From Octopus bimaculoides (lineage: Eukaryota): a DNA stretch of 41,102 nucleotides. The translations under genes were made by a program, and so were the position numbers. The notes beneath the pieces were generated by a model, which saw nothing but the letters and a program-made list of their open reading frames with translations, did no database searches and was not told where the DNA came from. This document shows, one piece after another, positions 27,254 through 38,121 of this stretch. Each line of letters begins with the position of its first letter. The stretch's first letter is position 1. Location of the stretch: the NCBI RefSeq assembly GCF_001194135.2, contig NC_068982.1:78290323-78331424 (forward strand). Reading direction: 5' to 3'.

Positions 27254-27808
27254 GAGTGAGAGAGCAGTGCATGCCATCAAAGTGACACTAGGTTAAAATA
27301 TACGAAGCCCAGTATACCCATCATGACTACCCATCTGATACGGGTACACCAGGCACATACATCACAACCATATGTGCGCGGCATGATGATCTCGTATCAA
27401 TATAATCAACGCATGACCTTGCAGATGGGGCCCAGTTAGAATTTTCTTCAGGTTGAGTAGCCCATCCCGCTCAAAAGGCCCATGAATAAGGTTTGTTTAA
27501 GGATGTTGAACAAAACACCCATGTTTCCAAAGGTGAATTATTCAAACCCTAAAGAATTCCTCTCAACACATGACTATGATGCTTCTCCACTACTTCTGCT
27601 TGTGATCAGGAATGCCCATATTGTCAGCCACCAAGGGACCTGCTCAACTAGCTATGGTCAAACAACTGACAAGCAAATCTGTGGTATTGAGCAGAATGTT
27701 TGCTGTAGCCCATCTTTTATACCAAGACAAAACAATGTACATGATAACATTTGCAATCAGTAAAGATCAAAATCCATGAGAGCCACTATCTGGTACTACA
27801 TCAGAGTA
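27254..27808 (-). mobile_element. ~555-bp non-coding element (family C), copy 1
   Basis: End-to-end match to 30748-31302, 32728-33281 and 37551-38121; ATT tracts on both sides. Confidence 0.9.
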
Positions 27809-27852
27809 TTTATTATTATTATTATTATTATTATTATTATGATTATTATTAT

Positions 27853-28670
27853 GTTTTTTTTCTTTTCTTCTTTCTTCAAATTTTCTTCCATTTCTCGCCG
27901 AGTGTTTTCTGTACACCTAGGGCAGAGAAACTCGTTGTATGCATTCCCAGTTTACACACGCAAATTCACAGGTAAAATATGTATTAAGAAAAAAAAAAAA
28001 ATTCATGAATGGATGTTGTTTTCACAGCGATAATGCTCTTCTCAGTACATGAGTCGTTCCACTTAGCACGAATTTTTGCACTTCCTGTAGGGATGGTAAG
28101 CCTGGTATCATTTTCAAATAGGTTTCAGTACCTTTTTTTTATCATTCCTAGAGATCCTACAATCACTGGTACGGTAGTCGCCTTGAGGTGCCACATTTTT
28201 TCAATTTCTATTAGCAAGTCTTTATATTTACTGATCTTGTCAAATCCTTTCGCCGCTATATNNNNNNNNNNNNNNNNNNNNNNNNNNNNNNNNNNNNNNN
28301 NNNNNNNNNNNNNNNNNNNNNNNNNNNNNNNNNNNNNNNNNNNNNNNNNNNNNNNNNNNNNNNNNNNNNNNNNNNNNNNNNNNNNNNNNNNNNNNNNNNN
28401 NNNNNNNNNNNNNNNNNNNNNNNNNNNNNNNNNNNNNNNNNNNNNNNNNNNNNNNNNNNNNNNNNNNNNNNNNNNNNNNNNNNNNNNNNNNNNNNNNNNN
28501 NNNNNNNNNNNNNNNNNNNNNNNNNNNNNNNNNNNNNNNNNNNNNNNNNNNNNNNNNNNNNNNNNNNNNGCTTCAGGATGGTGTTTATACCATTTGTCAG
28601 CGGTTTTGATTTTATAATGCTGACATATTGTCCAGTGTAAATACTGGCCAACTCTGTCATGTCTTGCTTT
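27853..28670 (-). mobile_element. R4/Dong-like LINE 3' fragment (copy 2), interrupted by gap
   Basis: KARHDRVGQYLHWTICQHYKIKTADKWYKHHPE, gap, then DKISKYKDLLIEIEKMWHLKATTVPVIVGSLG..GTTHVLRR. (AAT)n at both ends. Confidence 0.9.
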
Positions 28671-28723
28671 ATTATTATTATTATTATTATTATTATTATT
28701 ATTATTATTATTATTATTATTAT

Positions 28724-29640
28724 AGACGTCGCATAGTATACAATATCGTGAGGTTGTTGATTGAAGATATTTTGTCTACCGGGGGTTTGTACTGTTTGTC
28801 AAGTCACAACAAGGACCTTAGGCAGACAGTACTTTACGCAATATGCATGCAGTTCCAAGTAATACCGATTTTTGCAATGCATCTAGATTGTAGAGTATCT
28901 CTAAAGTTTTCAAATGTTTTTTCAGATTGGGTGGTATTGAACCCAATGTTGCGATGACAATAGGGATAAACTTTATGTTTAACTCTCGTAGCTTCCACAT
29001 CTTAGCGATCTCAATTCTTAGGTCTCCATGTTTATCAACCTTTTCTTTCTTTCATGATGATATGTTGATCTCCTGGCGCTGCCACATCAATTATTAGATA
29101 CACTTGTTTGTCCCTCCTGAAGGTTGCTATACCTAGCCTTCGGTGCTCTAATACCTTGTCTGTCTGGAAATCAAAGTCCCAGAGGATTTTTGCCTTCCCC
29201 TTTTCGTCCGTAACCTCATATCCATACTTACGCCATAGTAGCCAGTGGAAGTTTTGGGCTACCTCGTAGTGTCTACGCTTGTACTATTTCTGCGCAAGAC
29301 TTTCACATGCACTAACAATGTGAGTCACGCTTTCGACCCTCTTCCCACACATCCTGCAGAGGTCCGTTGCACTTGTGTGGTATATATTTGTAACGGTTGG
29401 TGCAAAACCGTTGTTCCACCACGGGAAAAGATCTGACGCAGTGTTAATTCAAATTTGGGTATAGTGGATCGAATCCACTTCACGCCTGCAAGATTCCTAT
29501 ATATTCTTTGTTACTGAGCTGATATTCAATGCTTGGTTCTGGGCAGCGATGATTAGGCTTTCAGTATTCTTTTTTAGGTCACCCTTGTTAAGCCATCGCC
29601 ATGATGCATCCTGGTCTTTTAATTTGTTGGTTTCAGCAAT
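28724..29640 (-). mobile_element. R4/Dong-like LINE 3' fragment (copy 3)
   Basis: SWRWLNKGDLKKNTESLIIAAQ..CRMCGKRVESVTHIVSAC..KAKILWDFDFQTD..QKSVLLGTACILRKVLSA*, 3'UTR and (AAT)n tail. Confidence 0.92.
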
Positions 29641-29740
29641 TTTATTGATCTCCGAAGGATGAAAGGCAAAATTGACCTCGGCAGAATTTGAACTCAGAAC
29701 GTAATGAGGGATGAAATACCACTAAGCATTTTGTCTGACA
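29639..29740 (-). mobile_element. SINE family B internal fragment fused to the 5' end of R4 copy 3
   Basis: Minus strand aaatgcttagtggtatttc..gagttcaaattctgccgaggtcaattttgcctttcatccttcggagatcaataaaat runs straight into LINE coding sequence. Confidence 0.8.
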
Positions 29741-29741
29741 T

Positions 29742-35703: not shown

Positions 35704-36618
35704 TGGCAAGAAAAGCCCCTACATGGTAAATACTGGGCTAAACTAAATGCGAAAGAAATAGACAGAGAAAAATCCCAGCAATGGCTGAGAAGCTCAGGAC
35801 TCAAAGCAGAGACTGAAGGATTTTTAATTGCTGCACAAGACCAAAGCCTCCCCACCAGAAATTACCAAAAACACATAATGAAAAGAAATATAACAAGTAA
35901 CTGTAGAATATGTGGAGATCGACAAGAAACAATAAATCATATTATCTCTGGCTGCCCAGTCCTGGCTAAGAAGGAATATATCCACAGACACGACAGAGCT
36001 GGGACCTATATACACTGGAAGCTATGCCAACNNNNNNNNNNNNNNNNNNNNNNNNNNNNNNNNNNNNNNNNNNNNNNNNNNNNNNNNNNNNNNNNNNNNN
36101 NNNNNNNNNNNNNNNNNNNNNNNNNNNNNNNNNNNNNNNNNNNNNNNNNNNNNNNNNNNNNNNNNNNNNNNNNNNNNNNNNNNNNNNNNNNNNNNNNNNN
36201 NNNNNNNNNNNNNNNNNNNNNNNNNNNNNNNNNNNNNNNNNNNNNNNNNNNNNNNNNNNNNNNNNNNNNNNNNNNNNNNNNNNNNNNNNNNNNNNNNNNN
36301 NNNNNNNNNNNNNNNNNNNNNNNNNNNNNNNNNNNNNNNNNNNNNNNNNNNNNNNNNNNNNNNNNNNNNNNNCTATCATAGTAGGTGCCTTAGGTATAAT
36401 AAAAAAATATTCAGACAAATACATAACAAAAATAACAGGACTTACAAATATATATAACATACAGAAAATTGCACTACTGGGTACTGCACACATCCTACGC
36501 AAAACACTTTCAATACAGTAAACATAAGAGCACCACAGCAAACCACAGCACATACCCAAGGCGCACAGAGCTGCGCTCGGTAGTGAAGTGAAAGCACGTT
36601 ATAAAAATAAAACTACTG
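35704..36618 (+). mobile_element. R4/Dong-like LINE 3' fragment (copy 8), apparently young
   Basis: Stop-free WQEKPLHGKY..WLRSSGLKAETEGFLIAAQDQSLPTRNY..CRICGDRQETINHIISGC..RHDRAGTYIHWKLCQ, gap, IIVGALG..QKIALLGTAHILRKTLSIQ*. (AAT)n at both ends. Confidence 0.93.
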
Positions 36619-36689
36619 AATAATAATAATAATAATTTTGGGGTTGGAAACTGTGAAAAGTAGGTGTAAGGAGGAGGTAAAATTCGGTG

Positions 36690-37165
36690 CGACCACAATC
36701 TATGGAGAGTGACTGAATTGGAGACTTGCAAATTCCTGTGGGATTTCCCAATTCAAACAGACCAGATGCTTCAGCACAACAAAGACAAAGTAAACCACAT
36801 GTGCTTATAATTGATGTTGCATGCCCATTTGACCCATGGACAGTTAAGAAGGAAGATGAGAAAGTAGACCTACACAATCCTCTGAAATAGTCCAACTATG
36901 GAAGATGAGAAAGGTGAAGATACTGCCAATCATTGCTAGGGCCTTGGGGACAGTATCAAAAGATAATGGGAGGAACATAAAGAAAATAAGAGTAGGGTTT
37001 CCAGTAGAACTGTTACAAAACTGTGCCTCCTTGGCACAGCCTGAATCAACCGGAAAGCATTAGATAGTTGAAGAGAACAAATAGCATAGTACCATTGGTA
37101 GCACTCAAGTCATGCAAGATTGTAGGAGTTTCTGCAAAACCTGAGTTAAAAAATAAATAAATATC
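36690..37165 (+). mobile_element. R4/Dong-like LINE 3' fragment (copy 9), old
   Basis: KFLWDFPIQTD..IIDVACPFD..KKEDEK..LWKMRKVKILPIIARALG..CLLGTA*INRKAL with indels. Confidence 0.8.
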
Positions 37166-37249
37166 ATCATCATCATCACCACCACCACCACCATTATTAT
37201 TATTATTATTATTATTATTATTATTATTATTATTATTATTATTATTATT

Positions 37250-37423
37250 GACTGAGAGAGCAGTGCATGCCATCAAAGTGAGACTGAGGTACAACTATAC
37301 GAAGCCTAGTATATCCATTACGACTACCTGTCAGATAAGGATACATTTTCTCCCTCAGTCACAGCTTCAGGATGGTGTTTATACCATTTGTCAGCGGTTT
37401 TGATTTTATAATGCCGACATATT
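37250..37423 (-). mobile_element. Chimeric insertion: R4 LINE internal segment + 3' end of family C
   Basis: 37346-37423 encodes ICRHYKIKTADKWYKHHPEAVTEGEN (59/60 nt identical to 28570-28629 over the comparable part); 37250-37345 is the last ~95 nt of family C. Confidence 0.88.
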
Positions 37424-37550
37424 ATTATTATTATTAATAATAATAATAATAATAATAATAATAATAATAATTATTATTATTATTATTATTATTATTATTA
37501 TTATTATTATTATTATTATTATTATTGTTGTTGTTGTTGTTGTTATTATT
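37421..37550. repeat. (ATT)n(AAT)n(ATT)n polarity-switching array
   Basis: ATT to 37435, AAT 37436-37470, ATT/GTT to 37550. Confidence 0.95.
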
Positions 37551-38121
37551 GAGTGAGAGAGCAATGCATGCCATCAAAGTGGCACTGAGGTAACATATAC
37601 GAAGCCCAGTATACCTATCATGACTACCCGTCTGATAAGGATACACCAAGCACATGCATCACAACCATATGTGCGCGACATGGTGACCTCATGTCAAGAT
37701 AAACAGCGCATGACCTTGCAGGTGGGGCCCAATTAGAATTTTCTTCAGGTCAAGTAGCCCATCCAGCTCAAAAGGTTCCTGAATAAGGGTTGTTTAAGGA
37801 TGTTGAACGAAACACCCATGTTTCCAAAGGTGAATTATCCAAACCCCAAAGAATTCCTCTCAATACATGGCTATGATGCTCCTCTACTACTTCTGCTCGT
37901 GATCAGAGATGCACATGTCGTTAGCCACCAAGGGACATGCTCAACTGTTTAAGGTGAAACAACTAACGAGCAAATCTGTGGTATTGAGCAGAATATTTGC
38001 TGTAGCCCATCTTTTATACCAAAACAAAACAAAACAAAACAAAACAATGTATACGATAACACTTCCAGTCAGTTAAAATCAAAATCCATGAGAGCCACTG
38101 CCTGGTACTGCATCAGGGCAT
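37551..38121 (-). mobile_element. ~555-bp family C element, copy 4
   Basis: Full-length match, with an internal (AAAAC)n expansion at ~38021-38045. Confidence 0.92.

Follow-up and report, generated by a model that had tools for sequence, protein, structure and literature searches.

A non-coding ~555-bp repeat of octopods in (AAT)n microsatellites, a probable passenger of Dong/R4-type LINEs

What kind of mobile element leaves short, non-coding copies with constant ends in arrays of a single trinucleotide? The question is raised by a 41,102-bp stretch of the Octopus bimaculoides genome (NC_068982.1, positions 78,290,323-78,331,424; hereafter the window, always at its full length), in which the region from 26.6 to 38.2 kb is a nest of trinucleotide microsatellite packed with retroelement pieces, among them several copies of a unit of ~555 bp. 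[quoted passage not shown] With a probability of about 0.68, the unit appears to represent a non-coding, non-autonomous family of retroposons of octopods, of the type without long terminal repeats (non-LTR), that is copied into (AAT)n by the machinery of Dong/R4-type LINEs; the case for mobilization in trans by a Dong protein is circumstantial.

Copies, ends and flanks in two octopods

Comparison of each copy with the window by blastn, combined with MAFFT alignment, identifies exactly four full-length copies (c1 to c4), in precisely the positions initially given for them, and one 96-bp 3' fragment (c5), with no further matches. Pairwise identity between the copies is 86-91% (Kimura two-parameter distance 0.095-0.154), the matches among them have E = 0, which excludes chance similarity, and none of the five touches an assembly gap. 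The start points of the four long copies, at (A)AT(G/A)CC(C/T)TGAT, differ by no more than 3 nt, and all five copies terminate in ...CTCTCA(C/G)TC (CTTTCATTC in c2). The common ends noticed in the preliminary description are thus real, but its reading of the 5' end, ATGCC(C/T)TGATGCA, does not extend to c1 and c2, which have ATAC(T/C)CTGAT(G/A)...; similarly, the truncated copy does retain the 3' end, but in the form CAGTC and not CACTC. The only substantial difference in length, ~16 bp in c4, is due to a (TTTTG)n expansion on the element strand (38020-38047; CAAAA x5.6 on the plus strand).

On the downstream side, (AAT)n follows the 3' end directly in c2 to c5; in c1, the 3' end abuts a degenerate AAT-like stretch which is the complement of the ATT-type tail of an octopus short interspersed nuclear element (SINE). 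On the opposite side, (AAT)n directly precedes c1, c2 and c3, and in c1 this tract, (AAT)14, leads to the LINE fragment denoted H. On its own sense strand, each of the five copies has (AAT)n after the 3' end, and so do the RLE-type LINE fragments examined, so that the common polarity of the element and its LINE neighbours, as originally proposed, is confirmed.

Additional copies come from a second octopod, represented by Logan contigs from runs SRR11869384-94 that were reached through spurious open reading frames (ORFs) matched by phmmer and that also contain octopus-type SINEs. This sample yields nine distinct loci, with 70-79% identity to the consensus of O. bimaculoides, that keep both the 5' end, AATGCCCTGATGCAG, and the 3' end, CTCTC(A)CTC/CAAT(C/T) (Table 1). 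The two copies of the tandem locus L003 end in ...CTACTC and ...CCCACTC, each followed by AAT-type sequence, and L018 lies behind a 3' end similar to that of LINE H and (TAC/TAA)n. In the two species together, (AAT)n is found immediately upstream of six of the eight copies with an intact 5' end, and an AAT-type repeat follows 10 of 12 3' ends; since (AAT)n also stands upstream of the element, the repeat marks the target and is not a tail alone. A search of the JGI metagenomes for more copies, by DNA pattern, gave 0 matches.

Truncation is polar, in agreement with the orientation first assigned to the element. Among the 14 loci sampled, 5' sequence is missing in c5, L009, L012, L018, L003a and L007. 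There are no 3'-truncated genomic copies, the 3' end being absent only in L007, where the contig ends, and in the chimera L002, and the genomic copies that reach the 3' region all end at ...CTC(A)CTC or CAAT(C/T). The termini are conserved across species at least as well as the interior, and this conservation includes the first ~20 nt. Fixed ends, AAT flanks and truncation confined to the 5' side together form the pattern expected of target-primed reverse transcription into a specific microsatellite. As judged from these sequences, the family predates the split of the two octopod species.

Two observations on individual loci can be added. Both c1 and L009 are inserted in the complement of an octopus SINE tail; the orthology of the two loci that this arrangement of element and reversed SINE brings to mind was rejected, since the other copies are at least as close to L009 as c1. 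Furthermore, a second 5' end or junction recurs near nt 120-135 of the element (ATACCACAGATTTGCTTG; motif ATACCACAGATTTGC) and resembles the true 5' end (ATACCCTGATGCAG). It is seen in L009, L012 and L018 (nt ~120-132), in the O. bimaculoides gene models P0004 and P0007, and in L002 (nt 1090-1020, minus strand), and partial 5' duplications stand in front of element nt 1. These features could reflect either an alternative start site or preferred points of template jumping.

Table 1. Element copies, hairpins, LINE and SINE pieces and AAT tracts, with positions in the window, and loci of the second octopod
Feature	Positions	Strand	Remarks
c1, full-length, 555 bp	27254-27808	-	blastn, MAFFT
c2, full-length, 555 bp	30748-31302	+	(AAT)n on both sides; blastn, MAFFT
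c3, full-length, 554 bp	32728-33281	+	upstream (TAA)21; downstream (AAT)10, then (AAC)53
c4, full-length, 571 bp	37551-38121	-	3' side (AAT)n/(AAC)n; 5' side unique DNA
c5, last 96 nt only (nt ~460-555)	37250-37345	-	then (AAT)19
Conserved 48-nt hairpin (20 bp) in c3	33181-33228	+	~50 nt from element 3' end; RNAalifold
Counterpart hairpin in c1	27307-27354	-	
73-nt coding fragment of Dong-type LINE	37346-37418	-	...ICRHYKIKTADKWYKHHPEAVTEGEN; ...KWYKHHPEAVTEGEN; joined directly to 5' side of c5
LINE fragment A	31367-32317	+	5'-truncated, between (AAT)n tracts
LINE fragment B	32334-32650	+	90% identical to fragment G
LINE fragment C	33472-34384	+	CCHC, RPDIV...D...K, ...LTSTAHILRKIQSI; then (AAT)9
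LINE fragment D	34477-34690	+	extreme C-terminus and 3' untranslated region; family fused to element in L002
LINE fragment E	35707-36618	+	broken by gap 36032-36372
LINE fragment G	28724-29700	-	
LINE fragment H	27853-28668	-	broken by gap 28262-28569; then (AAT)14, then c1
(AAT)n target tract upstream of c2	30598-30749	+	
Further AAT tracts	31303-31366, 32665-32727, 33282-33313	+	
(AAT)19 after c5 3' end	37193-37249	-	
Further AAT tracts	37420-37550, 27810-27852	-	polarity as after c5
Octopus tRNA-like SINE copies	26694-26905, 27013-27240, ~29757-29945	+	
Octopus tRNA-like SINE copies	~29640-29735, 35470-35683	-	
Octopus tRNA-like SINE copies	13403-13514, 17858-17948		
L004			full-length: (AAT)5-ATGCCCTCATGCAGTACCA ... 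GCTGCTCTCTCAATT-AACAATAATAAAAG
L003			two tandem copies; second begins AATGCCCTGATGCAG after AAT repeat
L009, L012, L018			without first ~120-130 nt; extend to 3' terminus
L003a, L007			without ~15-30 nt at 5' end
L016			diverged, near full-length; no AAT flanks
L002			chimera with Dong-type LINE

LINE neighbours, fusions and the 3' hairpin

The LINEs that share the arrays with the element are represented by nine fragments with a C-terminal ORF, all of them 5'-truncated, of which A to H lie within 27853-37160 and one at 21313-22034. The ORF contains a C-x2-C-x7-8-H-x4-C knuckle followed by RHD, then ILWDF...TD...RPDIV...D...K, and terminates in ...ALLGTA(R/H)ILRK(V/T)L; at the 3' ends examined, an AAT-type repeat comes next, on the strand of the LINE itself. 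This family is spread across metazoa (395 matches, some with Pfam zf-RVT). A profile built from 21 homologues of the C-terminus matches, among PDB entries, only R2 retrotransposon proteins, over the CCHC and KPD...D...K(Y)K motifs (E from 5.6e-5 to 7.7e-4). Because these R2-only matches cover the zinc knuckle and the endonuclease motifs, the neighbours are RLE LINEs with an R2-type CCHC and PD-(D/E)XK region.

The label Dong/R4 is used here for fragments that include no reverse transcriptase (RT) domain within the window. Dong is an RLE-bearing LINE of the R4 clade, from Bombyx mori, that is site-specific for (TAA)n. The features of the window LINEs match this insertion preference as well as the octopus 'Dong-R4' annotation. 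LINEs annotated in this way are abundant in octopus, with many insertions annotated as recently active (PMC13282606; PMC8967140); the annotation also appears in PMC9115989, the naming in the literature being that of RepeatMasker. A non-octopus animal (locus L001, ENA ERZ25066843, 10730-10990) has a related RLE LINE whose C-terminal ORF is intact and which ends in ~250 bp of (AAT)n, with another 5'-truncated LINE immediately after the repeat; nesting is thus also found outside cephalopods, and no copy of the element is present at this locus. Two of the window fragments are associated with short tandem duplications: one of 25 bp x2 at 22089-22138, beside (TAT)n at the 5' side of the fragment at 21313-22034, and one of 32 bp x1.9 at 34472-34533, at the 5' junction of fragment D.

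Two of these LINE fragments are interrupted by assembly gaps. The flanks of the gap at 28262-28569, inside fragment H, are successive parts of one C-terminal ORF on the minus strand, and those of the gap at 36032-36372, inside fragment E, encode ...HWKLCQ and IIVGALG..., with ~110 codons expected to be missing against 341 N. A third gap (30011-30411) sits between a SINE head and unique DNA. Continuity across the gaps appears to fit the order and strand of the flanks; the gap lengths being estimates, the frame is not judgeable and the distances from c1 to c2 and from c3 to c4 are uncertain.

The element and these LINEs are not only neighbours but are also directly fused. On its 5' side, c5 is joined to a short coding piece of a Dong-type LINE (Table 1), with TGT microhomology at the joint and no repeat in between. 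Between this piece and positions 28570-28629 of LINE H, 59 of 60 nucleotides are identical, and on its upstream side it meets (AAT)n in a 5'-truncation junction of its own, a different one; at its usual 3' ends (27853-27990 and L018), the H family lacks the last 96 nt of the element. In L002, the order is reversed: nt 1-466 of the element run straight into a Dong-type LINE of the fragment D family, whose 3' part is present from just upstream of RHD to the contig end; ahead of the element are (AAT)n and ~70 nt that repeat part of its own 5' end. The two breakpoints, nt 460 in c5 and nt 466 in L002, are both located at the foot of a conserved hairpin. Junctions of another kind are present in P0004, P0007 and L002, in which internal element sequence abuts nt 1 of the next unit. 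Template jumping is known for R2-type reverse transcriptases. These latter junctions fit the trace that would be expected of an enzyme leaving the 5' end of one RNA and continuing on another, and the c5 and L002 fusions likewise would fit template switching by reverse transcriptase, with a sample (n = 2-3) that makes them suggestive.

The hairpin in question was delineated by RNAalifold at nt ~457-504 of the consensus. An alignment of eight sequences from both species has 85% of cells paired, against 27-45% with the partners slid; four pairs are changed on both sides, a number of pairs reached by 32 of 500 shuffles, and the corresponding number of cells is reached by 8 of 500. The fold of the whole element is unremarkable (z = -1.28). 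Hairpins are also present in the folds of the LINE 3' untranslated regions (UTRs), none of them sharing a motif with the element. The 48-nt hairpin is best described as a candidate, suggested by folding, for a structure that binds protein or pauses the RT.

Transcription, a possible mechanism and its rivals

The element is devoid of coding capacity. No ORF is conserved among the copies; the best frame, which is antisense, carries four stops, and ~3% of shuffles reach three or fewer. Searches by word index and by phmmer, the latter run exhaustively against 1.84 billion representatives, returned only 'uncharacterized' gene models of O. bimaculoides and Logan ORFs, the latter being further copies of the element. 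A hidden coding origin was rejected on these grounds, as the matches are confined to spurious octopus ORFs and gene models.

Nor are there indications of a structural RNA at the head of the element. ARAGORN finds no tRNA genes, Rfam assigns no family to the element in a scan of the whole window at the gathering score, and at E<=10 the region 26900-38300 yields no tRNA, 5S, 7SL, hepatitis delta virus (HDV)-like, hammerhead or twister match within the element. Matches to a loose double-pseudoknot descriptor of HDV-like ribozymes in the first 330 nt of each copy are copy-specific, AU/GU-rich and no more numerous than in shuffled sequences, with the proviso that divergent ribozymes could escape such a search; at the 5' end, CTGATGC does not recur as CUGAUGA from copy to copy. 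In every copy, the sense strand contains runs of four or more T, two to eight per copy, one of which, at nt ~333, is common to both species. Because of these runs, a full-length transcript of the element by RNA polymerase III (Pol III) is unlikely, as far as can be predicted from sequence. Compared with a canonical SINE, the element has neither a Pol III-type head nor a LINE-derived 3' tail.

Signatures of other classes of mobile elements were looked for as well. Inverted repeats are short and internal, with none at the termini, and derivation from a DNA transposon, in particular a miniature inverted-repeat transposable element (MITE), was rejected for this reason. The flanks of c4, ATGAA and ATAAT, do not match as a target duplication would, and what separates c2 from c3 is microsatellite with pieces of LINE 3' sequence, not the interior of an LTR element; an LTR or solo LTR was rejected accordingly. 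A terminal repeat of a retrozyme or Penelope-like element was rejected, given the absence of the hammerhead family at E<=10. The preliminary description had claimed the lack of ORFs, of inverted repeats, of TG..CA ends with a target duplication and of a tRNA head, and had considered HDV-like and hammerhead ribozymes; the first four claims stand, and neither type of ribozyme turned up.

A mechanism that would account for the copies can be outlined. The RNA of the element would start at the conserved ATGCCCTGATGCAG and run through ...CTCTCACTC into the downstream (AAU)n; considering the T runs in every copy and the lack of a Pol III head, it would probably be made by RNA polymerase II (Pol II), or by read-through plus processing, and not by Pol III. 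An endonuclease and RT of the Dong/R4 type would cut one strand of an (AAT)n microsatellite, the nicked (ATT)n strand would anneal to the (AAU)n tail of the RNA, and target-primed reverse transcription would usually reach nt 1, early stops yielding the 5'-truncated copies. Occasional jumps of the enzyme to or from LINE RNA might produce the chimeras. Given that no LINE 3' UTR in the window resembles the element, recognition of the RNA is placed on the (AAU)n tail and perhaps also on the 48-nt hairpin, the best candidate for recognition by a protein.

Several observations weigh against the attribution to Dong/R4-type LINEs. One is the lack of any likeness between the element and the nine LINE 3' ends in the window, by blastn (word size 9) and by inspection; there is therefore no classical SINE/LINE 'common tail', and the option of a SIDE-like derivative of the LINE, raised at the outset, finds no support at the 3' end. 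The initial placement of the copies in (AAT)n is correct for most flanks but not for the 5' flank of c4 (38122 onward), which is unique DNA. The covariation support for the hairpin, with eight sequences, is modest, and it is possible that the chimeras arose instead by DNA-level deletion between adjacent insertions. A single Dong consensus of O. bimaculoides tested by Petrosino et al. gave no sign of recent activity (PMC9115989). Finally, a LINE fragment of the L1-Tx1-like type (34706-35460, minus strand) has its 3' end near 34706, followed by four AAT units (AATAATAATAAT).

This last fragment brings up what seems to be the strongest alternative, albeit an improbable one, namely that the element is indeed a non-autonomous retroposon but is moved by LINEs of another clade with AAT-type tails (L1-Tx1-like, RTE or CR1), the Dong fragments being mere co-tenants of the arrays. 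Such an origin would be compatible with the lack of 3'-end similarity to any Dong-type fragment, and octopus has abundant RTE and CR1 (PMC13282606, PMC9115989). However, both direct fusions carry RLE-type LINE sequence, neither Tx1 nor RTE; insertion in pre-existing (AAT)n, with the repeat on both sides, is a hallmark of Dong-type site specificity; and the other Tx1-like copy in the window (23400-26618) has an (ATC)n tail.

Somewhat less probable still is the derivation of the element from a longer autonomous one, either as a Dong 5' UTR joined to the 3' end by internal deletion, as in SIDEs, or as a long 3' UTR. L002, with nt 1-466 and a LINE ORF, and c5, with a LINE ORF and nt 460-555, can be read as a 5' module and a 3' module of such an element, and in L003 the element begins, at its nt ~17, ~75 nt downstream of a LINE ORF end. 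Nevertheless, the normal 3' ends of LINE families H and D, which are known in the window, lack the 96-nt module, and both termini have (AAT)n on the outside in four copies in the window and at least two in the second octopod; moreover, even a LINE-derived unit would remain non-autonomous. A DNA-level origin, by segmental duplication or as a satellite, a MITE- or Helitron-type transposon or a solo LTR within AT-rich repeats, would agree with the clustering of the copies within 11 kb and with the TG...CA that the unit reads when each end is credited with a flanking A, but is highly improbable in view of the missing inverted repeats, target duplication at c4, LTR interior between the same-orientation c2 and c3 and hammerhead or other Penelope/retrozyme signature, of flanks that differ at every copy, of 5'-only truncation and of fusions with LINE RNA-like sequence in the same orientation.

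Relation to known passengers and other features of the window

Taken as a passenger of Dong/R4-type LINEs, the element can be compared with several known systems. It resembles the Dong/R4 LINEs themselves in target microsatellite, orientation, 5' truncation and nesting in the same arrays but, being non-coding and without detectable shared sequence, would be a passenger of this group and not a member. R2 SIDEs are short internally deleted R2 elements of Drosophila that keep the 5' HDV-like ribozyme and the 3' UTR of the parent. Like these, the element encodes nothing, lacks a Pol III promoter, begins at a constant 5' end and would travel with a site-specific RLE LINE; unlike these, it has no detected ribozyme and a 3' end that matches no LINE 3' UTR in the window (for R2 ribozymes, see PMC3774820). 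The passenger biology of LINEs has been reviewed in general terms (PMC3747384), and the comparison can be extended to the L1 system, where the proposed recognition of the tail, (AAU)n here and poly(A) there, has a counterpart in Alu and SVA, the latter likewise without a Pol III head, whereas the tail of the element is also its genomic target, which makes it site-specific, and the partner would have an RLE and not an apurinic/apyrimidinic endonuclease. Alu and SVA with L1 are tail-recognized ('relaxed') passengers, as are SINEs in which a simple-repeat tail is the only feature shared with the partner. In their logic, R2 SIDEs and the tail-recognized passengers of L1 come closest to the element.

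The tRNA-derived SINEs of octopus (OR/OK-type) are also short, abundant and non-coding and occupy the same trinucleotide arrays, but they are ~210-230 bp long, have no sequence in common with the element and carry (ATT)n on the sense strand. This polarity is opposite to that of the element, so the SINEs use the arrays differently. The heads of the SINE copies in the window are recognized by neither ARAGORN nor Rfam.

The element thus represents a new family of a familiar type of genomic parasite and not a new type of element. No described passenger of Dong/R4 was found in the searchable literature, a search that did not extend to Repbase or Dfam, and automated repeat libraries of octopus contain hundreds of unclassified families (PMC13282606). 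A wider claim can be made only tentatively, and we give it less than even odds: that this is the first described passenger of R4/Dong, recognized by tail (and hairpin) with no shared UTR, transcribed by Pol II from an internal start, that it builds and extends the octopod (AAT)n arrays together with Dong, and that the fusions at the hairpin record R2-like jumping in vivo.

If mobilization by Dong/R4-type enzymes is the right reading, the element would be a natural reporter of template choice by these enzymes, which are relatives of R2, itself under development for site-specific gene insertion; at issue would be whether they choose by the repeat tail alone or by structure too. It would also help to explain how AAT microsatellites of octopus grow into multi-kilobase nests of retroelements and would assign one 'unknown' or 'unclassified SINE' family of cephalopod repeat libraries to a defined class. 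The general picture of LINE and passenger biology would be unaltered.

Some peculiarities of the arrays themselves deserve a record. On the 3' side of c3, (AAT)10 changes abruptly to a perfect (AAC)53 (33282-33471), the change of unit being located right at the tail of the element; on the 3' side of c4, AATAAT(AAC)6 is followed by (AAT)n, again a switch of unit directly at the tail. Between c5 and c4, the polarity of the microsatellite flips at 37435-37470, where (TAA)12 interrupts an extended run of (ATT)n; possible causes are the inverted insertion of a very short piece, an event of replication or repair, and an artefact of assembly.

The L1-Tx1-like LINE is present in the window as two fragments, the one mentioned above and a longer one on the plus strand (23400-26618). 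The latter includes an RT ORF (24676-25359; ...KVLGVWFGPDL...), its tail is (ATC)15, and (GAA)n(AGT)n stands in front of it at 23166-23269. At 40100-40810, overlapping ORFs on both strands resemble, by eye only, remnants of a mariner/Tc1-type transposase (METKELCASMKFCFLLGKMAAETV...). The window also encodes, at 9413-10372 on the plus strand, an intronless seven-transmembrane receptor of 319 amino acids that exactly matches an NCBI/EukProt protein and whose O. sinensis orthologue is named neuropeptide CCHamide-2 receptor.

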